From Macrostomum lignano (Eukaryota), in NCBI GenBank assembly GCA_002269645.1, contig NIVC01001467.1:1-20639 (forward strand): a DNA stretch of 20,639 bases. Reading direction: 5' to 3'. Each line of letters begins with the position of its first letter. Positions within the stretch are counted from its first letter, which is position 1. The translations under genes were made by a program, and so were the position numbers. This document shows, piece by piece, positions 3,476-20,639 of this stretch. Under the pieces are notes generated by a model. It saw nothing but the letters and a program-made list of their open reading frames with translations. It had not been told where the DNA came from and did no database searches.

Positions 3476-5915
3476 TCACACTTCGATAATACATTTCGAC
3501 GTCGCACTGAATCGGTCACGTCTAGATCGAGCCGAAGCTGCTGCGGTTGTCGATGTTGGCGAAGCTAGCTGCTGCCGCTGCTGCACCAGCACGGAGCCCG
3601 TGCTGCTCCCGACGTCTCTCTCTCCGTCGTCGTCTTCGCCGGCGCTGTCACTTTCGTCGCCGCCGCGGCACAGCGCCGCGTACACGATAGCAGCAATCAA
3701 CAGGATAAACAAGGACGCGGCGACAGCAATGACGGCTGGAATCCGGCTAAACTGTGACTCGCAGCTGGCCAGCTGAAGGTCCAGCACTGGCCGGTTGTGC
3801 AGAGCGCTGGGTGAGGCGCAGCGCAGTTGACGCGAGTGCAGCCCGACCACGGACACGTTGGTTGCCAGGGCCCAACGCCAGAAATGACGCAGTCGGCCGC
3901 AGTCGCAGCGCAACGGATTGCCAACCAGGTCGATTCTGCGCAAGCCGAACAGCGAGCGCATGGCGTCAGCGCTGACGCTGGAGATTCGCGCCGACCGGAT
4001 CGACACGTCGCGCAGGTGGCTGGCTGAACGGAAGGCGTCGCTGTCGATGTCTCTGATCGGATTGTAGTCAAGCGCCAGACGTCGTAGAGAACTCGGAAAG
4101 ACAACGCCGGGCCCGGGCGGCTGGCGGATGTTGCAGCGGCTGAGCTCAAGCTCTTCAAGCTCGTTGAACTCGCGGAACAGGCCCCAGTTGTTGTTTTTTA
4201 GGTAGGCAAAGATTTCGTAGCGGTTGAGCTTGAAGACGCGCAGAGAGCTGGCTAGCCTATCCAGGCTGGACTTGAACAGCGCAAGAGTTCGCGCCTCCAT
4301 GGGGTTGTCGCTCAGGTCCAGCAGCTGCACATTTGTGCTGTGCAGGAATGCCTGCGTATCGATAGTACTGATGTTGTTCACGCCGACGTGTAGTTTGCTG
4401 AGGCCAGTGGAGCCGTAGTCAGCGAGTATCTGCAGCCGGTTGCCCGTCATGTCCAGCTCTTCCAGCTCCCTGGCTCCCAGGTCCAGTGGCTCAATCTGAG
4501 GAAATCCATTCCAGCTGAGGTTGAGAAAGCGCAGATGCGGACAGTCCCGGTCAGGTTGTCCGGAATCTGGCTGATCCGGTTGCGACTGAGGTCGAGTCGA
4601 AGCAGTTTCGGCGAGGCGGCAAAAATGCCAGCCAGATGCTCGCGCCGCAGCTCGTTGCCGCCGAGGAGCAGCTCAGTGAGGCCCGAAATTTGCTGCCGAG
4701 TTGGTCGGAAATCCTTCAGGCCGTTGTCTCGAAGATCCAGCGACTGGAGGCTGGCGAAGCGAGTAAACACTGATGGGTGAAGATTGTGCAGCGAGTTTCG
4801 GCCTAAACTGAGCCAACGGAGATTCGCCGGCAGGCGGGTTGGGTCAACGAAAATTGTTAAAAGATTGTGCGACAGATCGAGCCGCATCAGGTTGTTGAGA
4901 TCGGATAAGTTTGGTATTTCGGTTAGACGATTGTCGGACAGATCCAGCTCAGACAGTCGCGTCAGACTGTTTAGAGCGCCATTCTCCACGGTTGCTATGG
5001 CGTTGCTAGCTAGGCTGAGGCGTCTCAGGCTGTGCAGGCGGAGGTCGCGGCCTCGGAATGCGTAGGCGGGCAGGCGGGCCAGTCCAAGCCTTCGCAGACG
5101 CAGTTCGTCAAGATCACAGTCGGCACTGACAGACCTAAGCAGTGGTTTGAGCGCCCCGCTACCCGTGTAGGACAGAGCCGGGTTGCCGGATAGGTCTAGC
5201 AGGGCCGGACAGCTCGCCACGGGCCAGCGAAATCTGCTGTCCACCGACTCTAGCAGATTGTGCGATAGATCTAAACGAGTGTCGCGATTCAACTGACGAG
5301 CCGTCATCACGGGCGGTCTTTCTAAGGCGTCGGTTGATGACCAGGTCTGAGACTGAGAAGTCACCGAGCGCAACCGATTGTGCGACAAGTTCGCCTCGAA
5401 CCAGACTGGTAAATTATCGAGCAAGTCAAACGGCAGCACGCTCAGCATGTTGTGACTCAAATCGATGATTCGCAGATTAACGCAACTGCTTAGATCTTTG
5501 GCGTCCAGGTTCTGCAGTCGGTTGTGCGATAGTCTCAGTTCAACAAGATTGGCAACGCGGTGAATAAATTCTTGTTGAGCTTGGTGATTGCGTTCTTCGA
5601 TGCGGACAGAACACGCAGATGAGGAGCGGACGCGGCAATGCTGACTGGCAAGTCTGCTAATCGGTTGTCGTCCAGATTCAGCTCAAGCGTGGCAGGGTCC
5701 AGCAGGTCGCAGGGCACCTCCGTGAGACCTTTTCCGCTGCAGGTAACTGACAGAACCGCTGTGCTTGGCGCCACCGCGGGGTGGGGCAGCTCGCACCAGC
5801 ACCTGCTCGGGCAGCGGTAGCCCAGGTCGCCCGCCGCGATGACATCCGCCAGCCGAAGCGATGACGCTTCGTAAAGCTGCAGCAGGTGGACCAGCAGCTG
5901 CAGCAGGGCTGGCAT
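3476..5915 (-). CDS. Intronless type I membrane leucine-rich-repeat receptor (signal peptide, LRRNT, ~22-24 LRRs, LRRCT, TM, ~60-aa tail, no TIR); ~813 aa after repairing two -1 frameshifts at ~5550 and ~4548
   Basis: ORFs 5535-5915, 4447-5460 and 3476-4450 join into one LRR series if one base is restored at each junction (...LFTALP-NLVELRLSHN...; ...PDNLT-RDCPHLRFLNLSWN...ELEELDMTGN). LRRNT CPSRCWC...VTCSGKGLTEVP; LRRCT GNPLRCDC...LRCASP...SC; TM IPAVIAVAASLFILLIAAIVYAALC. 2440 nt + 2 = 814 codons. Confidence 0.88.
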
Positions 5916-8209
5916 CTATGGCCCTAAATTATTCAAGCCTTTCACGACATCGCAGCGCGCTTGCAGCACGACCAATGAAGTAGTTTGTTATACGAATCTC
6001 TTCAACTGCTGCTGGTTATTTAAGAAATGTAGAACTCCATACCTACATGTAAGTAACAAAACTGTTTTTATTCTGCTCTTAAAGAAACATGGCATGGAGA
6101 AGCTGAAGCAACTGTCTCTCAGCCAATGGCAGCGCGTTTACTGGACAAGGCATGCCTGTAAATACCGACTTTCCATTGGGTTTAGCTAGCAGCTTAATGA
6201 AGTGGCCTTTAGGGAGGCATAGGAACCTTTTTCTAACCCCAAAATGCAATTTTGGAATGTGGGGTGGATCGGATGTCGCACAGCTTGGCATTATTTTGCC
6301 ATTATTTTCTGTAGGAAAAATGCCTGAAAATTTTTTTTCTGCGCACTTCAGAGGCAAAACAATTAGTAGCACTGCTTTAATAACCTTTTGTTGCAACGGT
6401 CAAGCGTTCTGCTGATTAATTTATTACACTGAAGAAATATTAAATGACGCTTATTCAAGCTTTAGACAGTGGACTAATGCATTGGTATAAAACAATATTC
6501 GTGCAAGCATAATATATAGGAATGAAAAAAAGCATGGTTCATTAATACTATAGGACAGCTGCAATATGCGCACAAGAAGGAAGCAGACAATTACACCTGC
6601 TGTGGATCGCCTTAACAGAGAGAGAGAGGAAGTCTTCTAGGGGAAAAACTGATTGGTCCAATTAAAAAGGCAGCTCCTTTTTACAAGGCGCAAGAGGCAT
6701 CTATAGGAGTCTGGGGAGTTTCTTACTTTACTGACTATACTAGGGAGGCTTCTGCTAACGCATAGCAGCCACCGCTCATTAATTATGCTTTGATGACGCG
6801 TGCTCAGCAGTGGTGGATAGTAGTGCATTACTAGCTGCGCATTTTCTCAAAGAGCCGTGGAACTAGCATACTAGTTTAATATCCACGAGCACCTGATTGC
6901 TTAACTTGCTTTAATTCACAAACTTGGAAAAGTTTCTTCGACCTAAAGGAATCGGAGACAACTCGTACATATATGCTGTCATTATCTCATTATATACCTA
7001 TGTAATGTTCCAGCACAGTTAATAAAGTATTTTCGCAGACAATATTTATTTGCGATCGCTTCGAATCTTCATCCATGGTAAACGGATTGGCTGGGGCAAT
7101 CAGCACAAACTCTGCAGAAGTCCGCCAGCCCGCCACACGTCCTTCGGCAATCTCCTCCCTGGCCTTCTCCTTAGCCTGAATCAAACCGAACGAGAAGGCA
7201 AGTAATAATTTTTTTCGTCCTCGCATATAATCAATCGAATTATGACGGTTGCCGATCTCCCAGAACCGTACGCCCATGCCCCTTGTGAGCAAAAAACTTT
7301 TCTACACTTAGTCAGTAGCCTCAGCTCGCTGAGCAATAATTCGACTTTCTTTTTCTGCACATCCGATGAAGCATGTGCTGAGTGAGTTTTCTTAGAATAT
7401 TCCGCCGGACCAAAAAGTTTTTTTCTTGCTGTAAACTTCTGCTTGACCTCGTTATGCTGCGGAATTCCTTCGACGGAATTCTGGCGAAAAATGTTATGGG
7501 CATGTAGTAAAAGTTTTACGAAGCCTGCAGGTTACTTTTTAGTCCGAGGTCAACACAGCTCTCACTGTGCCCGGCAGTTGCATACTAATCTTCCATTAGC
7601 TGTGTGACAACTGTCTCTCTTGATTGCCTCGCAAAAAAAAATATTGAAAGCGACTTTACACCGACTGGAACCTGATTAGTTTTGCATACTACTGAGAAAT
7701 GTTTTGCGCCCTGTAATCATCATCCCATCGATTGTACTAATGATGAAAAATCAATTAGAAATTTTTATCTTGCGATTAATTTGTCAGTCCATTTCTGTTC
7801 TCAGTTGCTTATTGAGAGCAGGGAGTTAAAGTTTCAAGCTAACTATACAGCACTTGCGTTGCTGTCAATAACGCATTTATGCAACTATGAGACTATACGA
7901 GAAGTTACCAACTTATTTCAATTTTCCATAATACTTTATGCTGCAAATCAATACAAGTTTATAACCAAACTTAGCCAAGACTGCTGAGTTGTAGAGTACA
8001 TACTGCCAGTCATTTTTTGCTAGTCATTATTCGCTCGCAGCGCTAAAATTGATCTGTAGTATCGCGTGAAGCGCCTAGTTGTTGGGAAGGCTATACAGCT
8101 GTTAGTATTTTTAACAAATGCGCAACGATGCTGACTACTTAGCGTCTTATCGTATAAATAGTAGTATTTACCCCAGTTTTTCCAAAGTTTCTACAATAAG
8201 TCAAGCAAT

Positions 8210-9867
8210 CTAAATCTTCGTAGTAACAGATTCTTCCACCGGTATGTCGGTGCGGCTTTCCTCGGACGCGGTGAGACGCCTCCTTCTCTTGATCGCTGCC
8301 TCCAATAAGTCGTGCATCAGTTCGAAAAGCTCGCAGAATGTCAGTAAAGACATTCCTTAGTAGAGGCCCATTATTCCGCCTACATCAGAAAAGAAATTAG
8401 CGAAGCCATAGTCGATTGACAGAGTCACCCGATTGCAATTCTGCCGATGCGGTCTGAAGGTCACCTTGAGCAGATTGGCGTTGATGAAGGCTCCTGCAGT
8501 GCTTAAATTGGCACCCGCCAGGTAGCTTAGAGTGGGTTTACTCAAGTTTTGAGATCGAGCGTCGTTCAAAGCCTGATCGATTGTGCTAGCAACGAATGGC
8601 TCGATAGAGCTGTAAGTTGGCCAGTCCGAGTTGGAAATGATCGGATCGTAGTTGATGATTCTGCACGGGGCCAGCTTGCTGCATTGCGCTTGAGCCAATT
8701 CGCTGACCCGAGACAGATGGTCATTGTCGGTTAAGCGATCTGCCGCTAAATCGCCAACCTGTTGCAAAAAGTTGCTCTCATCGCCGGAAAGGTTGAACAA
8801 GTAGCGCCGACCTCTAACTGGCCAGGGCAGTGGACCGGCGTCCCCGCTGAGGTTCATGAGTGCCTGATACTGCTTGTGATACTCCAGGTAGTAGCAGTAG
8901 GAGTAGCTGTAGCTGTGGTTGTAGGGTTCTTGCGAGTACGGATTCACAAACTACAAATCGAAACTCGATGGACTGTACAGCTGCTCGGTCATGCCAATCT
9001 CCACAGTGTGATATCGACCTGGACCAAGCGAGAATGACGTCACGAATTCGGTCGGGCACTCGCCCAGTGGGCACAGATAGATTCGAACTCCAGCCCTACG
9101 ATCCGGGTCGTCGAAATCCATTCGCGACAAAGACCAATCCGAGACGGGGATGGGTGCTCCACCGGCGAACACCTTGGCTAGAATTGGCGGACCAGATGGC
9201 GAGGCCGAGAAAAATTTTTCGTCCGTCAGTAGCGTGACGGTGAGTCCGCCGGATGGGCCACTTTTAGACAGGTTGACTTTGATCAACTGATAAAATCATT
9301 CAGGACCCATCGCAAACGGCGGAGAAACACAGGATGGTGGAACTGGCTTGCTGTCACGGGATCAGAAGTAGGCAAGCCGTAATTGGAAACGTAGGAAACA
9401 TCCGACGCAATCAGTGACTGCTCAAGCCTGTGCGCGAATGCGTCCACAAGCAGCCGGTACTGGAGCGACTGGATGTATGCGAAGGTGTACCAGCGCTCGA
9501 CCTCCATCGGGTCCGAGCTGATATTCGCGGCCAGGATGATACGAGAAAACACCTCGGATGTGAGAAACAGCTGACAGTTGATTTCGGACACAGTATCGTT
9601 TATCGCCGCATAACTGGCAGATACGGCGATCTCAAAGCAGGCATATATATCGGGGTACTTGAACAGTACAGCGTTGGTGCCCAACGAGCTGGTCACCTGA
9701 CCGCTATTCAACTTGATAACGAAATCTGCGAAGCCTTTTAAGAACAGACCCAAGGATGCGAAATAAAGAAGTAGCCAGGAAAGCCTCACGTACAGAGGCT
9801 TTTTACTTATAGTACGACTCAATCCGTGAGTCGTGGTCTGTTTCGGAGCTACTTTAACTTGCTGCAT
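8210..9867 (-). pseudogene. Intronless DEG/ENaC (amiloride-sensitive sodium channel / ASIC-like) pseudogene, ~549 codons when repaired
   Basis: N-terminal TTTHG (HG motif), TM1 RLSWLLLYFASLGLFLKGF, FKYPDIYAC (FPxVTxC equivalent), SDWPT, and TM2 SDVGGIMGLY*GMSLLTFCELFELMHD. Lesions: 8-nt insertion 9287-9294 (frameshift), in-frame TAG 8951-8953 next to a 24-nt deletion relative to the paralogue, and TAA 8357-8359 inside GLYLG. Natural stop TAG 8210-8212. Confidence 0.9.
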
Positions 9868-10571
9868 CTACACGTGCTTAGAAATTCAAAGCTATAAATC
9901 CAAGTTACTCTAGGGAAGAGCCTAAGTAAATTTTGCAGCGAATATGGATTAATTTCTTCATTAATATTACAGATAGAGCAAGTTTTTGTTTGCGGAGGAC
10001 TCGGTGCAAACCGGCTTGTGATGTGTAAAGCTACCCGTTGCTATGCATGAAGGGTAGCTATACCGCAAAAGCAAATATCGTTATATAGTTAGTAATATAT
10101 ATATTTACGACTCGTACTTTAGGATGTTGAGCGTACTAAAGAGAGCAGTTGACATGACACCCGTTCAAAAGACTAAGTGGTTCTAATATATTTCGAAAGC
10201 TAGTGAGACTTAGGTGCGTAAAGAAAAGTGAGAATAAGATTGTGTTAAATCAACATGGGACAAAATGGATGGAGTTGTCTGCGTCTAGTTCACTGTTTTG
10301 TACTCCAAGCAGCTTTACTTTGGTTGACGTAGAGAATTGAAGTACGTTTGTAGAACACGACGTACTTCGAAAATTGAACAGGTACATGTAGCAATAGTGC
10401 CAATAAAAGCAGGCTTAGAACTGAATTTTCCAGGGGTTTCAGGGGGCTCAAAAAGACAATTGTAACTCCAACATGAATTGAAACGAAAGTTCTACATGAC
10501 CGCAACTGCATTGAACATGGATTGCAATATTGCAGCAAGAATCAGACGCATTTCTTTATTTAAAGATGATT

Positions 10572-10591
10572 GTTGACTCAGCTGAGTCAAC
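10572..10591. promoter_or_regulatory. Perfect 20-bp palindrome GTTGACTCAGCTGAGTCAAC holding two AP-1 sites / ARE cores around an E-box
   Basis: TGACTCA 10574-10580, TGAGTCA 10583-10589, CAGCTG 10579-10584; lies in the 1.1-kb region between the two divergent channel start codons. Regulatory function is inferred. Confidence 0.5.
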
Positions 10592-11463
10592 TGGCTGTTT
10601 GGGAGAAGTTGCAAAAAATCTATAGGGGCCAAAGGAACCCAGAAATTTAGCCAATGTATTTAAATATTGGCCCGATATTTAGTACAGAATTTTATTTAAA
10701 TAAAGCTATAGAAAATTTACTAACTTCTCTCAGACCCTGGCTGTGAAGCTTTGAGACCATCGTCTGTATATATATACGAGCATATAGGAATTTATTGTAC
10801 TCCCAATTATACCCATTCATTCTACGTACGTGTGTGTAGACGTTTACAAGAAACTAGTATGATCCAGCCGTGGCGGCAACAAAGTTTGGCTTATTTCAAA
10901 AAAGGAAGCGAACATAGCTAGAAAAGTGTGAAATTGAAGTATTTGTTCGTAAAGAAAAAATTCAACACAGTTTTACACAATGCAACAAGTAAAGGAGTCC
11001 CTCGCGCAGTCCACGTCCCATGGCCTGCCGAGGCTGGTTACAAAGAAGCCGCTCTACGTTCGCCTTCTCTGGCTGCTGTTTTTCCTCGCCTTTCTCGGCC
11101 TCTGCCTCCGCGGCTTGATAGATTTCGTTAAAAAACTGGAGAGTCGTCAGGTTAGCACAACTTTGGAGGCAAATGCGTTAGCCTTCAAATTTCCGGACGT
11201 GTACAAATGCATGGAGAATCCGGTTTCAACCAGCTATGCGGCGACGATGAGTAACCAAACACTGACGTAGCTGGTTCAAGGTACAATGCATTGATATTTG
11301 GGAGGTCAAGGCAAGGTCAACAGCAAGATGTCCTGATGAAGCTAGGGCAGTTGACATGGGCCCACGAATGTCCACGATAGATGAAAACGTGAGAATAGTG
11401 GAAGAATATGTATCTGCTACGCAAGATCAAATTAGCCACAGGAAAATAAGCAGTAGCAACAAG

Positions 11464-11780
11464 AGAGTTGTAGCCTATAGTGGTTAGAGCGTCGGACTCA
11501 CGACTTGAATGTCGATGGTTCGATTCCCGATCCTACTGGGACAATTGTGTCCCTGAGCACGACACTTAACTCTGCATTGCTTCGGTTCACCCAGCTGTAA
11601 AATGGGTACCAGCATTAGTTGGGGTAATTGAGGCTTTGTGTGGCGACCCCCCAGTCCTTGGAACGAACAGCCAGCCGTACGCAGCCTTCAGGTGCGCCGC
11701 ACAATAGCTGTGGCAGAGCTGTCGGTTGCACATCTGGCCCAATTGGGGCAGGTGTTTTCAATAGTTTTTGTAATACTACT
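11464..11780 (+). mobile_element. tRNA-derived SINE with a CORE-like central domain, inside intron 1 of the + strand channel pseudogene
   Basis: A-box-like TAGCCTATAGTGG (11471-11483) and B-box GGTTCGATTCC (11517-11527) in a broken cloverleaf, followed by TGTGTCCCTGAGCACGACACTTAAC...CAGCTGTAAAATGGG, which resembles the MIR/CORE consensus TGTGTGACCTTGGGCAAGTCACTTAAC...CATCTGTAAAATGGG; ends in a TAATACTACT-like tail. No clear target-site duplication; 3' end approximate. Confidence 0.8.
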
Positions 11781-13844
11781 GGTAAATAACCACCATCTGG
11801 AGCACTATACTAGCCTACAAAATGCTGCAAAAAAGAAGAGTTGTGCAAACAAAAAGCTTCGTTTTTAGAGACACTACATCGATGCAAGACAGGAATTTGC
11901 CAATCCCCCCCCAACAGATCTCAACAGCGCCTCTGAGATTTTTTTTGCCTCGGTGGCAACACAACTGAAAGACTAAATCGATTAAATATGTAGTATAGCT
12001 TTGCTCTGTTGCACTCGTTGGAATACAACAGCCTAATTGATGGAGTTGCTCACAGGCTCGAGCAGGCCATTCTAACTAGCGATTTTACCTACATCAGCAG
12101 CAACGGTCTGCCTTCCTACGAGGCCATGCCAGCGGAGGAATTCTTCCATCTGGTGTTTCTGCGCGGCTTTCGCTGGGTTCTGAACGATACTGTGCGGGCA
12201 ACGCTGGCCAAGGGTGGCACCGCTAGCGGCCTGACCGTCACTGTGATGACCGACGCAAACTTCTCCTCGACTTCACCAACAGGTCAGAGTACAACAACAC
12301 GCAGCTCACGCGTTTGATGGAATGGGTATAGAAGCCTACAATCACACAATCACGGGAAGCCCAATGGACAATAGGGGCCTTTCGGGGCATCATTGCGTTA
12401 GTGTCAAAAAAATTCTGTGAACAGCATGTGTAGCCATTCAACTAACCAATTGACACTAACAGGTCCATCGGTCCTATCCAGGGTGTACGCTGGCGATTCG
12501 CTAATCCCAGTTTCCGATTGGTCGCTGTCGAGAATGGACTTCGACGATCCAGATCGCAGGGCCAGGTTTCGAGTCTATTTGTGCCCACCTGGCGAGTACC
12601 CAACAGCGTTCGTGACGTCGTTCTCCCTCGGTCCCGATAGATATCACACGGTAGATATCAGCATGGCTGAGCAAGTGTACAACTCGGCAAGCTTCGAATG
12701 TCTGAGTGCCCTTTTGGATCAGGCTCAGTTTGTCAATCCATATTCTCAGGAGCCGTACAATCACACCTACAGCTATTCCTACTGCTAATTCAAAGAGTAT
12801 CACAGGTACAATACAGTTACTTTATTACACAATACTTTGTTGGATGATTTATTGATTCTACGTCGTGCTCTCGTGCTCCAGTACATGCAAAAGGTGCAAT
12901 GAAAACTGGAATCCTATTGTTGAATTTCATGGGCACGCCGCGTCCACTTCAGGCAATACCAGCAGAAAACCAACCTGAGCGGCGATGCAAGCCTCATGCC
13001 GTGGCCGCAGAGAGGCTACCGCTACCTGTTTAACCTGACTGATAAGGACGCCAATTTTCTCCAGCTGGCAGGAGAAACGCCAGCAGATCCGTCGTTTAGT
13101 TACGAAGAAATTGGCAACATAGTGGAGAACGCGCATCAGGTGTGCAAGTCGAAAGCGCCCTGCTCAACACTGGACTACGACGTCACCATGTCCAGCACGG
13201 ACTGGCCAACCTACAGTTCCGTGATGCCGTTTGTAACGGCCACTGTGCAGCAGGTCAAAGACAGGGCTGGCAACGCGTCCGTACCGGCGATTGCCCGACT
13301 GCTCGGCGCAGATGCAGCAGGTGCTGCGGCAATCGCCAGCGCTAATCTGATTAAGGTGGGTAATTGCTGTTAATTGGACCTTTGCTCATGGAGATCTGGA
13401 CAGATTTACCAATTCGGTACCGCCCCGAAGCTAAATTATTGATTTCCACAACGGATCACAAGGTGGGGAGACAAACCATTAACCCCTTGTCCCTCTCGGT
13501 GGCGACGCCTCTGGTTATGCCTTCTCGTTTCATATTTCCGTTCCATGTTTCTTTAAAAAATTCCTTCTGCTAATAAAAATTAAAGTGGATGTCCAAGTGA
13601 AAGATGCTAAAAATGATGACGCTAAAACCTTCAAATTCTAGGCCAGCTTCAGAATTTGTACGGCAACCTGCAGCCGATTCACTCACTCAGTCGACTACGG
13701 GATCAACAATTTCATCTCCGACATTGGCGGCATACTTGGCCTCTATTTGGGCATGTCGTTGCTGACAATTTCGCGAACTGCTCGAATTAGCCTACGATCT
13801 TGGCGTCGTTCTGTGGAACAAGTGAGCAGCGGCAGTTAAGACAA

Positions 13845-13858
13845 GTAACCATGGCAAC
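13845..13858. promoter_or_regulatory. RFX X-box consensus match GTAACCATGGCAAC
   Basis: Full match to RTHNYYWTRRNRAC; function untested. Confidence 0.3.
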
Positions 13859-14250
13859 TGTGAAGAAATCATTATTGACGGAGAAGCACCATCAGCGGAG
13901 ACTACGGGAGTTACGAAGAAGCAAAATGGAGCTGTTGCGCAAGAATTTGCGACGACAAATACGCCAAGAACCGAGTCAACTACAACAACAGATAGCACTC
14001 ATCACATTGTGCTGTGCGCCGAACTCAAGTGTACTCATTTTAGGCAGAATTCCTTTGTGTTTAAGTTACTAGGTATAGTTATAAAAAATGAATAATTATA
14101 AGAATAATAAGCTTTTTTCCAAGAAACAAGATGAAGCCACTCTTGTCCAGTCCTGTACACACAGTGGAAACTTTATTATATTTTATAATTAGGTACTTGA
14201 ACAGTACAATGAGAACGCTAATAGTCAATAGTTAAATCGGGCTTAGTTAT

Positions 14251-14610
14251 TTATTGATCCGTTTCCATAGCAACCGATGCTGCCTGCTGCTGTTTCTTTT
14301 GACGCTTCTTTCCAGCATTGCTACTGTCAGTAGCTGACACTTCCATCGCAGACTCGGCAACCTGTTCCTTTAACTCCCGCCTGAGCTGTTTCATAATTTT
14401 CCGCTTCCTCTTGCCAGACAATTCAATATTGGCGTTAGGGTTGGTGCGCAGCTTGCGCAACTGGCCGGGCGTTTGCAAATCCGCGTCGGGAATCTCGCAA
14501 ATTCGAGGCGGCTTGGCCGCGCGGCGTCGTTTGATCTTTTCCCTGTGCCGCTTGTGATTGTGCTTCACGTGGGCTGGTCGCTTCCGGTTGGGGTCTCTGT
14601 GCATGCCCAT
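14251..14610 (-). CDS. C11orf98: C11orf98-like small basic protein (119 aa), putative pre-60S ribosome assembly factor; single coding exon
   Basis: ANIELSGKRKRKIMKQLRRELKEQVAESAMEV and KRQKK match human C11orf98 as I recall it (ANITLSGKKRRKLLQQIR...AMEV...KRQKK); similar length; strong Kozak context ACCGCCATGG; AATAAA overlaps the stop codon (14250-14255). Confidence 0.8.
   Translation of the reverse strand: MGMHRDPNRKRPAHVKHNHKRHREKIKRRRAAKPPRICEIPDADLQTPGQLRKLRTNPNANIELSGKRKRKIMKQLRRELKEQVAESAMEVSATDSSNAGKKRQKKQQQAASVAMETDQ
14261..14274. promoter_or_regulatory. RFX X-box consensus match GTTTCCATAGCAAC inside the 3' end of the C11orf98-like CDS
   Basis: Canonical X-box (GTTGCTATGGAAAC on -), encoding V-A-M-E-T; may be incidental. 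Confidence 0.25.
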
Positions 14611-14975
14611 GGCGGTTTAATGAGTCAGCATGCATATTGGTGTTACGTTTTATTTCATGAATCATCCAATACTGGAAAAAGTTCTTAAAGACCGATCGGG
14701 AGGGGAGAGCACGTTCACACAGGGTGTACACGGACGGTGGTGGAATGGCTCGTAAAGCTCCAATGACCAATGTTTAGCGCACAAGCCTCAAATGAATTTT
14801 AAACTCAACAATTAACACATCAACACTTGAACAGCTTAGGTACTGAACTAGCCATTGTCGTTCAATTGTATATTTCTCGCAATGCGCAGTTGATGACAAA
14901 TGCACTAATATTAGGCACAGAAAACAGATCGATAGCTTCTTCGGAAAACTTGCGTGTTAAGAGGCACTTTTAAAG

Positions 14976-16610
14976 ACGATTCTCTAGTGAGAGTGGGGGC
15001 GATTCTCTACAGAGAGTGAGGGCGATTCTTTTGGATAGTGAGGGCGATTCTCTAGGGTGAGTGAGGGCGATTCTCTAAGGAGAGGGGGCGATTCTCTAGA
15101 GAGAGTGGGGGCGATTCTCTAGGGTGAGTCAGGTCGATTCTCTAGGGAGAATGAGGGCGATTCTTCAGAGAGAGTGAGGGCGATTCTTTATGGAGAGTGA
15201 AGGCAATTCTCTACGGAGAGTAGGGCGAATCTCTAGGTAGAGTGAGGGCGATTCTCCAGGGAGAGTGAGGGCGATTCTCTAGGGAGAGTGGAGGCGATTT
15301 TTTAGGGAGAAAGAGGGCGATTCTCTAGGGAGAGTGGGGCGATTTTTTATGGAGAAAGAGGGCGATTATCTAGGGAGAGTGAGGGCGATTCTCTAAGGTG
15401 AGTGGGGCGATTCTCTAGGGAGAGTGGGGGCGATTCTCTAAGGAGAGTGGGGCGATTCTCTAGGGAGAGTGGGGGCGATTCTCTAAGGAGAGTGGGGCGA
15501 TTCTCTAGGGAGAGTGGGGGCGATTCTCTAAGGAGAGTTGGGCGATTCTCTAGGGAGAGTGAGGGCGATTCTCTAGGGAGAGTGAGGGCGATTCTCTAGG
15601 TGAGTGGGGCGATTCTCTAGGGAGAGCGAGGGCGATTCTCTAGGGAGAGTGAGGGCGATTCTCTAAGGTGAGTGGGGCGATTCTCTAGGGAGAGTGGGGG
15701 CGATTCTCTAAGGAGAGTTGGGCGATTCTCTAGGGAGAGTGAGGGCGATTCTCTAGGGAGAGTGAGGGCGATTCTCTAAGGTGAGTGGGGCGATTCTCTA
15801 GGGAGAGTGGGGGCGATTCTCTAAGGAGAGTTGGGCGATTCTCTAGGAGAGTGAGGGCGATTCTCTAAGGAGAGTGGGGCGATTCTCTAGGGAGAGTGGG
15901 GCGATTCTCTAAGGAGAGTTGGGCGATTCTCTAGGGAGAGTGAGGGCGATTCTCTAGGGAGAGTGAGGGCGATTCTCTAGGGAGAGTGGGGGCGATTCTC
16001 TAGGGAGAGTGAGGGCGATTCTCTAGGGAGAGTGAGGGCGATTCTCTAGGGAGAGTGGGGGCGATTCTCTAAGGAGAGTGAGGGCGATTCTCTAGGGAGA
16101 GTGGAGGCGATTCTCTAGAGAGAGTGGGGGCGATTCTCTAGAGAGAGTGGGGGCGATTCTCTAGAGAGAGTGGGGGCGATTATCTAGGGAGAGTGGGGGC
16201 GATTCTTTAGGGAGAGCGAGGGCGATTCTCTAGGGTGAGTGAGGGCGATTCTCTAGGGTGAGTGAGGGCGATTCTCTAGGGAGAGCGATGGCGATTCTCT
16301 AGGGTGAGTGAGGGCGATTCTCTAGGGAGAGTGGGGGCGATTCTCTAAGGAGAGTGAGGGCGATTCTCTAGGGAGAGTGGGGCGATTCTCTAGGGAGAGT
16401 GGGGGCGATTCTCTAGGGAGAGTGGGGGCGATTCTCTAGAGAGAGTGGGGGCGATTCTCTAAGGAGAGTTGGGCGATTCTCTAGGGAGAGTGGGGGCGAT
16501 TCTCTAAGGAGAGTGAGGGCGATTCTCTAGGGAGAGTGGGGGCGATTCTCTAGAGAGAGTGGGGGCGATTCTCTAGGGAGAGTGGGGGCGATTTAAGAGC
16601 GATTTTAGGG
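14976..16610 (+). repeat. 22/23-bp minisatellite, unit GGGCGATTCTCTAGGGAGAGTG(A/G), about 70 copies, with local higher-order structure
   Basis: Directly visible; left edge (14976-15390) degenerate, interior homogeneous; a 113-bp five-unit block recurs (CTCTAAGGTGAGTGGGG at 15661 and 15774). Confidence 0.97.
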
Positions 16611-16679
16611 GTTCAAGATGACAAAGACAAAGTACACACTGTCATACAAGCAGAAATCAAGTCAAAGGCTGTCGAATAA

Positions 16680-17516
16680 TCAACGCCTCCTTTTACCACC
16701 GCGACTGCCGCCTCGACCGCCACCGCTAATTTTCTTTCTAACTGAGCTCTTCTTTGAACCGAACTTCTGCTGCTGCTTCTGCTTGGAATTATTGCCGCGC
16801 TGCTGTCGTGCTTTCTTAGAAAACTTCGACTGTCGACCGGAACGCGCCGTAGATGACTTTTCAACTTGGTCGTCATGCTCTTCATCATCATCACAGTTAT
16901 CAGCTGGTGCCCTGCCAAGACTCAGATCGCCTCCCCGACCGCCAGCAGAAGCGGCATGGATAGCTGAGAAATTCTGCTTCAACAACAGACTGGCTAATTG
17001 TCGAATCGAATGGCTAGCTACCTGGTTGCTACCCGAGGCTAATTTGCGTAGCAACGGTTCGCAAGACTGACAGGACAGTCCGCCTAGATCGGGATCGTCG
17101 TCAGTAGCCAGCACCAGCTGACCAGCCGCTGTGGCGGCGGCTTCGGCGTCATCAACATCGTCAGCTGGTTCAAGCAGTCGCTGCGCTCGAGGAAACACAG
17201 CCAACAGCCGGGCAGCACAGGTCAGCAGACAGGTTAGGGAAGCTTCCGTAGCGGAACTGCCGTTTCCATTTAGCAGAGCTGTCTGACAAATTGAGTCCAG
17301 TAAACGGCGCAGAAAGTTGACGGGTCGCATCGGCGGCAGATGACGCCGACGGTCGGCGAGGGCGGCCAGGAGGGTCTGAGACAGGCTGGGGGCCAGGTCG
17401 GGGTGGTGGCGAACCAGACGGGGCAGCCGCTTGTACAGGTGCAGGTAGAACCGGCGTGGGTCCAGGGTGAGCGCTTCGCCTTCTCCGCTGAGCAGGGCGA
17501 GGGCTGTGCGAACCAC
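16680..17516 (-). CDS. NOC3L: NOC3L terminal coding exon (CBF/Mak21-domain region plus acidic/basic RGG tail)
   Basis: Acceptor CTACAG|GTG at 17517; VVRTALALLSGEGEALTLDPRRFYLHLYKRL matches human NOC3L [31 protein letters not shown]; stop TGA 16680-16682. Confidence 0.9.
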   Translation of the reverse strand: MVRTALALLSGEGEALTLDPRRFYLHLYKRLPRLVRHHPDLAPSLSQTLLAALADRRRHLPPMRPVNFLRRLLDSICQTALLNGNGSSATEASLTCLLTCAARLLAVFPRAQRLLEPADDVDDAEAAATAAGQLVLATDDDPDLGGLSCQSCEPLLRKLASGSNQVASHSIRQLASLLLKQNFSAIHAASAGGRGGDLSLGRAPADNCDDDEEHDDQVEKSSTARSGRQSKFSKKARQQRGNNSKQKQQQKFGSKKSSVRKKISGGGRGGSRGGKRRR

Positions 17517-17705
17517 CTGTAGGTGATATAAAGAAAGTTTGAGAGTTTATGTGTGCCTTCTGCATGCTGGTTAGCCTGGTAAATAAGTGTGCTGATGCTA
17601 TATGCCGTGTAGAAAAGGGGAAATAAAATAAGATTTATAAGAGGCAAAAAGTCCAGGTGAAGACAGGTGAATAATGCAGAAATGGACAATATGATGGGCC
17701 AAGAC

Positions 17706-17708
<3 letters not shown>

Positions 17709-17736
<28 letters not shown>
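17709..17736 (+). repeat. (GACA)7 microsatellite in the last NOC3L intron
   Basis: Directly visible. Confidence 0.95.
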
Positions 17737-18115
17737 CAGATAGGGAGACTTTTTATTTTAAAAAACTGAACTGACCGGTTACAACCGGTGAGAGGAGGCA
17801 TTGCTGCCCATTCCGCCGACTCCCCTGAGCAGGCACACAATCGCGCGGATACGTACGCAGTCATACGCACAGGCACTCACTCACACAGGAGTGTACAGCG
17901 GCCCTAACTTTATTTATCGTTATGGCATGTACACTTTACTGTGCCTTGGGGGTTGTTGGCCCTCAAGCTGAGCGTTAATTGCACGAGCAGAGAGCCAAGC
18001 CGAGATTCCAAATGGTAGCCGCAAAATAATGTGACTGCACTTCGAATCGATCCTGGGCCGCTGGCACACCAGAGCGACAAGCTAGACCAATTGGCTACCC
18101 CCCGCCCCCCTGAGA

Positions 18116-18135
18116 GACAGACAGACAGACAGACA
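18116..18135 (+). repeat. (GACA)5 microsatellite just inside the donor end of the last NOC3L intron
   Basis: Directly visible. Confidence 0.9.
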
Positions 18136-18148
18136 GCAAGCCAGTCAC

Positions 18149-18505
18149 CTCAACAGAGTGCGCAGTGGACAGGTCTGGCCAGTCCAGCAGTGCCTGCAGC
18201 GCGCTAAACAGGTCCGGCAGCAGGTCCAAGTTGACTCTTAGCGATAGACGCGCCAGTCCAGTTAGCGCAGATGTTAGCGCGCGTGCTCCGGGTTTGGCGC
18301 GCAGGACGCGTAGATACAGATGCAACAGCAGCTCCGCGCACCGCTGCTGCAGTCGGGCCCGAGTGGCAGCGCTCTCCTGATGGCGCAGCTCCTCGAGGCC
18401 GCGAGTGGCATCGGCCGATCGCTTGCCCTGCCGGCGCTCTTTGCGGGATAACTTGGCCAGCTTCTGCTGGTGGGTAAGCCGCTGGTTGCCGGGCGCAGAC
18501 TGGTC
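18149..18505 (-). CDS. NOC3L: NOC3L internal coding exon (119 codons, phase 0/0)
   Basis: Acceptor CGTCCAG|GAC and donor GAG|GTGACT; LSRKERRQGK...LLLHLYLRVLRAK...ALTGLARLSLRVNLDLLPDL matches human LSRMQRKWKK...IVFVTYFRILKK...[20 protein letters not shown]. Confidence 0.88.
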
Positions 18506-18573
18506 CTGGACGGGTGGGAGGCGGACAAGGGAACTGGGAATTTAATTATCGGACCGTATTTTTAGAAGCTAGA

Positions 18574-19214
18574 AATATCCACATAGCAACCAGAGAATAA
18601 TAATATCCCCATAGCAATATAAGGGAATAAGAATATCTCCATCTAGAAACCAGAGACTAAAAATATCGCCATAGCAACCAGAGACTAAAATATCCCCATA
18701 GCAACCAGAGAATAATATTAACCCCGCAGCAACTAGAGATTAAGATTTAAGAATATCGCCTTAGCAACCAGAGAATAATATTAACCCCACAGCAACTAGA
18801 GAATAAGAAAATCGCCTTAGCAACCAGAGAATCAGAATATTACCATATCAACCAGAGAATACCAATATTCCCATGGCAACCAAAGAATAAGAATATCCTC
18901 ATAGCAACGAGAGAATAAGAATATCCCATAGCAACCAGAGAATAAGAATATCCCATAGCAACCAGAGAATAAGAATATCCCATAGCAACCAGAGAATAGG
19001 AATATCCCCATGGCAACCAGAGAATAAGAATATACTCATAGCAACCAGAGAATAAGAATATCCCCATAGCAACCAGAGAATAGGAATATCCCATGGCAAC
19101 CAGAGAATAAGAATATCCTCATAGCAATCAGAGAATAGGAATATCCCCATGGCAACCAGAGAATAAGAGTATTCTCATAGCAACCAGAGAATAAGAATAT
19201 ACTCATAGCAACCA
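18574..19214 (+). repeat. 27/28-bp minisatellite, unit ATAGCAACCAGAGAATAAGAATATCCC, about 23 copies, inside a NOC3L intron
   Basis: Directly visible; explains the 9-aa repeat ORFs (MGYSYSLVA). Confidence 0.95.
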
Positions 19215-19235
19215 AAAATCCGAAACGTAACCCAC

Positions 19236-19535
19236 TTTAGTGGGAGGCGGCAGATCTAGTCGAACGCTGGTCAGCACGTCTAAAAGGTCGGCATGTACTT
19301 TTGCTCCGGCGGCCACGGCCACGCGACAAGCGGCTTTTACCGCTCTGAGGGACGCTTCGCCGGCTCGATCCTCAACGAACAGCTGGCGAAATGCCGAGCA
19401 GGCGAGCGAGCTGATCTCAGCGGAGCGGCTTTGCAGACAAGGGGTTAGCCAAGCTATCAGCTCCGATGATTCGTTAAAGTTGGGATGATTGGCCAGTAGC
19501 TGAGAGAGGCAACGAATGGCCACATTGCGATTGGA
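19236..19535 (-). CDS. NOC3L: NOC3L internal coding exon (100 codons, phase 0/0)
   Basis: Acceptor CCCCAG|TCC and donor AAA|GTGGGT; VAIRCLSQLLANHPNFN...ACSAFRQLFVEDRAGEASLRAVK matches human VAVKSLCELLVALPHFN...[23 protein letters not shown]. Confidence 0.9.
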
Positions 19536-19689
19536 CTGGGGCGGTAGGGAGGAATGAATGTGGTCTGGGTTAGCTGAGTAATTAACTAATTAACTAACTA
19601 ATCAACATATCATTAATAAGCACTCTTCCTAAGTTGTCTACCCAAACGAAAAGTAATCTGATGATTTTACTAACTTTTAGAGAGTATTA

Positions 19690-20410
19690 CAGATGTCCAC
19701 TATATTCCCGTCCAATGTCCACTAATTTGACATTACAAATGTTGAATAGATTCCATCACATCACAATGTCCACTAGATTCCATCGCATCACAATGTCCAC
19801 TAGATTCCATCACAATGTCCACTAGATTCCATCACATCACAATGTCCACTAGATTACATCACATCACAATGTCCACAGATTCTATCGCATCACAATGTCC
19901 TCTAGATTTCATCGCATCACAATGTCCACTAGATTCCATCACATCACAATGTCCACAGATTCTATCGCATCACAATGTCCACTAGCTTCCATCGCATCAC
20001 AATGTCCACTAGATTCCATCACAATGTTCACTAGCTTCCATCGCATCACAATGTCCACTAGCTTCCATCGCATCACAATGTCCACTAGATTTCATCGCAT
20101 CACAATGTCCACTAGATTTCATCGCATCACACTGTCCACTAGATTCCATCACAATGTCCACTAGATTCCATCACATCACAATGTCCACTAGATTCCATCA
20201 CATCACAATGTCCACTAGATTCCATCACAATGTCCACTAGATTCCATCACATCACAATGTCCACTAGATTCCATCACAATGATCACTAGATAATATCACA
20301 CACAATGAACACTAAATAAAAATTACAATGTCTACTAGATGACTTCTCAATGTCCACTGGATGACTTCACAATGTCTACTAGATGACATCATAATGTCCA
20401 CTAGATGCCA
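19690..20410 (+). repeat. 27/22-bp minisatellite, unit CATCACAATGTCCACTAGATTC(CATC(A/G)), inside a NOC3L intron
   Basis: Directly visible; 27-bp units give the 9-aa ORF repeat MSTRFHRIT; 22-bp units lack one CATCA-like pentamer; both edges degenerate. Confidence 0.95.
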
Positions 20411-20557
20411 TGAAAATTTTGAAAACTCATCAAAACATGTTCACCCGATCAGTTAAAAATGTCCACCAGCTCCATAAAAATGAACCCTATACACTACAGT
20501 CTAGACTCAGTAAATTTCCACAAAAATGACTAACAGCATAACAAACACCCAACTCAC

Positions 20558-20614
20558 ATAGGCCAGTTCCGCTTCGTCTTTCTCTGCACCCGTTTCCGTT
20601 TTCTTCTCCAACCG
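20558..20614 (-). CDS. NOC3L: Probable small NOC3L exon (19 codons, RLEKKTETGAEKDEAELAY); the rest of the gene lies beyond the right edge
   Basis: Acceptor CTTAG|CGG and perfect donor TAT|GTGAGT, phase 0 joins the next exon; LAY|SNRNVAIRCL resembles human KAYKGLAEVAVKSL. The acceptor lacks a pyrimidine tract. Confidence 0.6.
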
Positions 20615-20639
20615 CTAAGTGTTTTTATCCTTAGCAGTC

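Follow-up and report, generated by a model that had tools for sequence, protein, structure and literature searches.

How does a gene without introns come to lie head to head with a close relative that has four? The question is raised by a pair of DEG/ENaC channel homologues in Macrostomum lignano (line DV1, assembly Mlig_3_7, GCA_002269645.1), on contig NIVC01001467.1, whose full 20,639 bp are referred to here as the window. One copy, on strand - (9867->8210; hereafter the minus copy), is intronless, and the other, on strand + (from 10980; the plus copy), carries four introns. An initial annotation of this DNA, made from the sequence alone, offered three explanations: a retrocopy placed beside its parent; a local inverted duplication followed by intron loss mediated by complementary DNA (cDNA); or intron gain in one copy. 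It leaned on precise multi-intron loss being the mark of an mRNA intermediate. We favour intron gain, with a probability of about 0.55: an intron-poor gene would have undergone inverted DNA duplication, and the plus copy would then have gained four introns.

Intron maps and age of the pair

The two copies are mutually homologous (tblastn segments, E 1e-7 to 1e-48), and each matches the Pfam family ASC (PF00858) over profile positions 3-455 of 455, with 93.2 bits for the minus copy (E 2.4e-26) and 123.6 bits for the plus copy (E 1.5e-35); both scores exceed the curated threshold of 23.6 bits. Both copies and the family alignment show the HG motif before the first transmembrane segment (TM1), TM1, the conserved cysteines, and the G-M-S filter in the second transmembrane segment (TM2), and H14, G15, G506-M507-S508, T511, and E514 are invariant in the minus copy, the plus copy, and P0001, an intact M. 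lignano paralogue of 572 aa (UniProt A0A1I8GD92). The ATGs at 9867 (-) and 10980 (+) point outward, with 1112 nt between them. The claim of a head-to-head DEG/ENaC pair is thereby upheld, as is the reported spacing of its start codons.

All four introns of the plus copy are canonical GT-AG introns, and their excision restores colinearity. The protein alignment is seamless over the junctions of introns 2-4, and excision of intron 1 leaves 113 nt in the plus copy opposite 114 nt in the minus copy. The four-intron structure described in the initial annotation is thus located in full; its end point for this copy, 14095, has to be moved, as the homologous frame ends at a TGA (13823-13825) and 13825-14095 is not part of the homology. 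As had been reported, the minus copy stays colinear across all four intron positions when set against the spliced plus copy; it is also colinear with P0001 (46-49% identity over 98% of length, tblastn), and therefore lacks introns. The description of the minus copy as running continuously holds for this colinearity, but not for its reading frame, which is broken by an 8-nt insertion, a TAG, and a TAA, in addition to an 8-codon deletion.

An exhaustive HMMER search with P0001 recovers only P0002 at 40% identity, with the next matches at 28% or less, and the nearest matches to P0001 are all M. lignano genes. The neighbour-joining tree has the topology (((minus, plus) 97%, P0001) 94%, P0002) 100%, which pairs the two copies with one another (bootstrap 97%) before any other sequence. 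A second group, clade B, unites P0005, P0162, P0003, and P0004 (99%). Because identity to DEG/ENaC proteins outside M. lignano is only ~20-28%, the pair is assigned, from these comparisons, to a lineage-specific clade with P0001 and P0002. We consider the locus, on balance, to consist of two ancient inverted tandem duplicates of a DEG/ENaC gene from a Macrostomum-specific, intron-poor lineage.

Intron positions were compared across nine M. lignano sequences, namely the two copies, P0002, P0003, P0004, P0005, P0157, P0162, and P0165. P0002 has one coding intron (77 nt, 'GKYYQ/IELSM'), and its frame is uninterrupted over all four plus-copy intron positions. P0004 has no coding introns and forms an intact single open reading frame (ORF) of 1704 nt. 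P0003 has two coding introns, at 'NTTR/CFNMS' and before 'NHSAH'; P0162, P0005, and P0165 have one each, at the 'NHSAH' position; and P0157 has two, one after TM1 and the other at the R/C position, as in P0003. None of these seven paralogues (0-2 coding introns each) has any of the four plus-copy introns in the family alignment. The outgroups thus largely fit the pattern that the initial annotation had named as the mark of intron gain, that of intronless outgroups: no outgroup paralogue has an intron at the four positions and P0004 is intronless, but the relatives other than P0004 have one or two introns elsewhere.

The wider family was sampled through a gene of the scallop Ylistrum balloti, with 13 coding introns, and one of the acorn worm Saccoglossus kowalevskii, with at least 10 (the positions in the latter are tblastn approximations, accurate to ~±2 residues). 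These two genes have eight or nine intron positions in common, and these ancient bilaterian positions are all empty throughout the nine M. lignano sequences; intron 4 of the plus copy lies 6-8 alignment columns from the nearest of them. Eight new intron positions are scattered over the nine M. lignano genes, four of them in the plus copy. Taken together, the alignments suggest that the Macrostomum clades descend from an intron-depleted ancestor and that their present introns occupy new positions. It is possible, at slightly less than even odds in our estimation, that these clades went through a retrogene-like reset, after which spliceosomal introns were repeatedly gained de novo.

The divergence of the pair bears on its history as functional genes. 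Over 510 aligned codons, the minus and plus copies have 54.5% amino-acid identity and 60.5% nucleotide identity, with 65%, 76%, and 41% identity at codon positions 1, 2, and 3. The proportion of synonymous differences (Nei-Gojobori pS) is 0.73 (bootstrap 0.67-0.78), which is saturated, and that of non-synonymous differences (pN) is 0.29 (0.26-0.33). As pS is saturated, the split of the copies is ancient; and as a neutral branch of such length would have randomised the non-synonymous sites too, neither lineage was neutral for most of this time. These rates indicate that both copies were long under purifying selection and that their decay is only recent, and that the minus copy was a working intronless gene for a long period, not a processed pseudogene dead on arrival.

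Further observations concern single members of the family. P0004 lacks the clade-B intron carried by P0003, P0162, P0005, and P0165, and from the alignment has evidently lost it. The R/C intron lies before a conserved cysteine in both P0003 and the distant paralogue P0157 (L005 7104-7176, L008 4380-4834) and is absent from closer relatives; either it is old and has been lost on several occasions, or it was gained in parallel at one and the same proto-splice site (CAG/GTG in both). In P0002 (BOX15_Mlig033047g1), the N-terminal 'MLQLKL...SAHG' (L003 ~9639-9790) is in another frame than the rest of the ORF, so the annotated protein starts after TM1; this frame break is either a single-base assembly error or the sign of a third decaying family member. 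An intronless gene for a 537-aa ASC protein occurs in a metagenome assembly (L009 501-2114; ENA ERZ22147071, ctg31520c, 4.24 Mb); it aligns with P0001 over its full length at 25% identity, and represents a single-ORF DEG/ENaC from outside Macrostomum. The UniRef names of the ASC-family proteins P0001, P0007, P0015, P0166, and P0167 ('Acid phosphatase', 'PBPe domain', 'PKD_channel', 'Reverse transcriptase', and 'Mab-21') are untrustworthy, and probably arose because gene models had been fused in the older ML2 annotation.

Intron gain, intron loss, and retroposition

From the homology, gene structures, lesions, divergence, and intron maps reported here, we infer both the direction of change (gain, not loss) and duplication at the DNA level. 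The founder of the lineage would already have been without the bilaterian DEG/ENaC intron set, probably through a retrogene-like reset in the distant past. The head-to-head pair would then have arisen by local inverted duplication of DNA, with the minus copy keeping the intronless layout and the plus copy acquiring four spliceosomal introns while still functional. Both copies would have been under purifying selection for most of their history, with stops and frameshifts arising recently and independently in each. Of the three options in the initial annotation, intron gain is the best supported because the outgroup paralogues are without introns at the four positions. The adjacency of the copies is predicted by DNA duplication and not by retroposition.

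Several points weigh against intron gain. The intron map extends to seven paralogues, and plus-copy introns in P0001, the sister of the pair, would reverse the direction. Intron loss occurs in the family, both in P0004 and in the absence of the R/C intron of P0003 and P0157 from other members, and animal introns are generally gained more rarely than lost. The plus-copy introns also yield no source: local alignment of the introns with each other and with the exons, on both strands, gives only chance matches of 15-19 nt, and blastn finds no similarity between them and ~85 kb of other M. lignano loci. The junction repeats of introns 1-4 are 2, 8, 4, and 3 nt long, vs. 1-6 nt in seven control introns. 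Additionally, intron 1 is one column from an intron found only in the scallop, in a stretch that is practically unalignable and with phases of 1 vs. 0.

Specific sources for the introns were considered. The 8-nt repeat at intron 2 (AACAG/GTC) makes a poor target-site duplication, being mostly splice consensus and with the controls reaching 6 nt. An origin by tandem duplication or from introners finds no support in the comparisons with introns, exons, and the ~85 kb of other loci. No relevant literature on intron gain or DEG/ENaC in Macrostomum was found.

In the chief rival to intron gain in the plus copy, the ancestor of both copies already had the four introns, whether acquired on the stem once P0002 had branched off or earlier still, and the minus copy lost them precisely and in place by recombination with a reverse-transcribed cDNA; the pair would likewise stem from a local inverted DNA duplication, with both copies decaying later. 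Precise simultaneous loss is the classical sign of a cDNA intermediate, loss is commoner than gain in most animals, and the family provides an example in P0004, which lacks the intron common to P0003, P0162, P0005, and P0165. Loss in place would also leave the copies adjacent. However, this history calls for a loss event on top of the four gains that otherwise suffice; the four introns are absent from every relative examined; and similarity is not locally raised where introns would have been, as conversion by plus-copy cDNA would suggest. We regard this history as a live rival, at something over one chance in four.

A true retrogene is much less credible. Here, the minus copy would derive from a reverse-transcribed mRNA of the intron-bearing ancestor of the plus copy, inserted 1.1 kb upstream of its parent in opposite orientation, with the shared upstream region borrowed as a bidirectional promoter, and would have decayed after long function. 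The minus copy is without every plus-copy intron and colinear from ATG to stop, and as a gene that was long functional it needs a promoter, of which one lies nearby; but landing ~1 kb from the parent is extremely unlikely for retroposition, and the outgroups, without introns at these positions, make an intron-bearing parent unnecessary. The lack of a poly(A) tract or target-site duplication also speaks against a retrogene, although it is weightless at such an age: the flanks of the minus copy contain no A run longer than 6 nt and no direct repeat of 8 nt or more, and no homology between the copies was found beyond the coding sequence, where none is expected at saturation. Because the split is old and synonymous sites are saturated, these three absences are uninformative. 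The initial annotation was correct in seeing neither a poly(A) remnant nor a target-site duplication. The values of pS (0.73) and pN (0.29) rule out a recent or dead-on-arrival retrocopy; of the options first proposed, in-place loss via cDNA is the one that continues to compete with intron gain.

Lesions and pseudogene status

Both copies are pseudogenes (Table 1), although the initial annotation had treated them as genes. In the minus copy, an 8-nt frameshift is joined by two premature stops; the plus copy is shifted in frame twice and interrupted by at least three premature stops. As no lesion is common to both, each copy decayed separately. Judging from the translated frames, neither copy is now expected to give a channel with an intact TM2.

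In the minus copy, the stretch with the insertion is 50 nt long; its counterparts in P0001 and the plus copy measure 42 nt (14 codons). Tiny introns that would rescue the frame (a 26-nt GT..AG near 9288 and one of 28 nt before 8951) were rejected, as they would excise conserved residues and are far below the shortest intron in these loci, 73 nt. In the plus copy, the degenerate start of exon 2 has a net loss of 1 nt and is closed in both frames, one having TAA at 11974 and 11983 and the other TGA near 11937 and TAG at 11991. The premature TAA of exon 3 replaces what is an aromatic residue in all relatives. The extra A in exon 5 is a single-base indel, and that lesion alone may be an assembly error. 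An alternative splice of intron 1 (donor 11267, acceptor 11998) is in frame and skips the stops of exons 1 and 2; it was rejected, having a weak donor, costing ~33 codons, and leaving the TAA at 12786 and the TM2 frame break unrescued.

Table 1. Coordinates of the DEG/ENaC pair in the window, with splice sites and lesions.
Feature	Position	Strand	Remarks
Minus copy, intronless DEG/ENaC pseudogene	8210..9867	-	ATG at 9867, terminal TAG 8212-8210
Premature TAA, minus copy	8357..8359	-	At a conserved hydrophobic residue directly before the TM2 GxS filter ('GLY*GMS')
Premature TAG, minus copy	8951..8953	-	CAG (Gln) in plus copy; adjoins the 8-codon deletion
8-nt insertion AGTTGATC, minus copy	9281..9288	-	Shifts the frame; TGA then at 9285-9283
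Spacer between start codons	9868..10979	.	1112 nt
Exon 1, plus copy	10980..11280	+	TM1, HG motif; in-frame TAG 11268-11270
Intron 1, plus copy	11281..11917	+	637 nt, phase 1, CAAG/GTACAA...CAACAG/AT
Exon 2, plus copy	11918..12282	+	First 76 nt (11918-11993) degenerate
Intron 2, plus copy	12283..12462	+	180 nt, phase 1, ACAG/GTCAGA...TAACAG/GT
Exon 3, plus copy	12463..12805	+	Premature TAA 12786-12788 ('YSYSYC*FKEYHR')
Intron 3, plus copy	12806..12952	+	147 nt, phase 2, ACAG/GTACAA...CTTCAG/GC
Exon 4, plus copy	12953..13355	+	tblastn homology
Intron 4, plus copy	13356..13641	+	286 nt, phase 0, TAAG/GTGGGT...TTCTAG/GC
Exon 5, plus copy	13642..13825	+	TM2; extra A at 13768 breaks the frame inside TM2

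The lesions can be checked against further copies of the locus. Mlig_3_7 is PacBio-based and highly redundant, with ~180 Mb of its non-repetitive sequence in blocks duplicated at an identity of at least 95% (PMC5730564), and parts of this locus recur in two more copies on the 688-kb contig NIVC01000438.1 (L001). L001 copy 2 is 99.85% identical to window 9792-20639, with zero differences over 10956-14400, which spans the whole plus copy; all plus-copy lesions are identical in it. L001 copy 3, with 98.6% identity to window 7158-11319, includes the minus copy and differs from it by only a single substitution plus the deletion of one further base; the three minus-copy lesions are all found in it, and so is the exon-1 TAG of the plus copy, which is thus present in both L001 copies. 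Most lesions are substitutions and one is an 8-nt insertion, whereas near-identical contigs differ by single-base indels. Neither copy is annotated as a gene on the contig (NCBI), and no protein close to either copy was found in the UniProt and NCBI M. lignano sets searched.

These comparisons leave very little room for the stops and frameshifts to be assembly or sequencing errors, or to be limited to redundant DV1 chromosome copies with one or both genes otherwise intact. The PacBio assembly does give some grounds for such a reading, since near-identical contigs differ by single-base indels (4 in 4.6 kb, 15 in 10.9 kb), two of the lesions are of this type (the A added at 13768 and the nucleotide missing from 11918-11993), and the P0002 gene likewise has an N-terminal frame break; but five lesions are substitution-type stops and one is the 8-nt insertion, which are atypical of long-read errors, all lesions recur in independently assembled copies, one of them 1.4% diverged, and the protein sets just cited hold nothing near either copy.

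In L001, a gap of 1407 N (14820-16226) is preceded by the equivalent of window 20639->9792 reversed and followed, at 16227-20360, by window 7158->11319 read forward (98.6% identity), and the pair is thus present twice on the scaffold, as overlapping copies that run in opposite directions. The arrangement reflects either a genuine palindromic duplication or the joining of a haplotig in the wrong orientation. The spacer between the start codons (9868-10979) has no similarity to the other M. lignano loci compared, except for its own duplicate in L001.

Related systems and surrounding sequence

As members of the DEG/ENaC family (Pfam ASC, PF00858), the copies have the HG motif, TM1, the post-TM1 FPD motif, the extracellular cysteines, and a TM2 with G-x-S and LT..E..EL; unlike DEG/ENaC channels, both have broken frames. 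The closest solved structures are FaNaC (7yvb, 8on7), then ASIC1, and a profile of seven intact M. lignano relatives likewise has FaNaC as its best structural match, followed by ASIC and ENaC. The minus copy resembles a processed pseudogene in being without the introns of its nearest intron-bearing relative and in now being disabled, but differs in adjoining that relative, in the absence of a poly(A) tract or target-site duplication, in its long purifying selection, and in having outgroup genes that also are without those introns. The four introns are unique to the plus copy among the nine family members, and may never have been in a parent. The pair is also similar to unprocessed duplicated pseudogenes, as local inverted duplicates that are independently disabled, one of them with introns; unlike ordinary pseudogenes of this type, the copies differ by four introns.

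Lineage-specific gain of spliceosomal introns has been described in Daphnia, Oikopleura, Caenorhabditis, and introner-bearing protists and fungi. The M. lignano case is comparable in that the positions are unique to one paralogue and the ancient positions of the family are all empty; it differs in having no repeated introner sequence in the loci compared, no target-site duplication above controls, and no similarity to exons. The pair itself, two dead channel genes in a flatworm genome of high redundancy, is ordinary, and it illustrates that an intronless copy beside an intron-bearing copy need not mean a retrocopy beside its parent. The family-wide pattern, with no ancient introns and scattered paralogue-specific ones, hints at real intron gain and merits systematic study. 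If a reset followed by repeated gain is what these clades record, M. lignano would be a tractable, transgenic-ready animal for studying the origin of new introns; were the gains confirmed, it would join the few animals with demonstrable recent intron gain and, unlike most of them, would permit transgenesis.

Within intron 1, positions 11464-11535 (+) weakly resemble a folded tRNA (Rfam RF00005, 19.5 bits, E 0.25, below threshold), which ARAGORN does not find; scans of the window for tRNA and Rfam families give no hit at threshold. The segment looks like the head of a degenerate tRNA-derived short interspersed element (SINE), and the greater length of intron 1 is probably due in part to such a relic.

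The neighbouring genes are seemingly intact, so that decay is confined to the channel pair and spares the rest of the region. They encode a leucine-rich-repeat (LRR) protein with an LRRCT domain, a predicted membrane anchor, and short introns (3476-5915, -); a 119-aa DUF5564 protein (14251-14610, -); and a NOC3/CBF-family nucleolar protein (16680-19523, -). Tandem satellite-like arrays occur at 229-1319 (19-nt purine-rich unit x58) and 14977-16593 (23-nt unit x71), and, in or near introns of the NOC3-like gene, at 18574-19214 (28-nt unit x23) and 19713-20314 (27-nt unit x20); all four yield long spurious ORFs.

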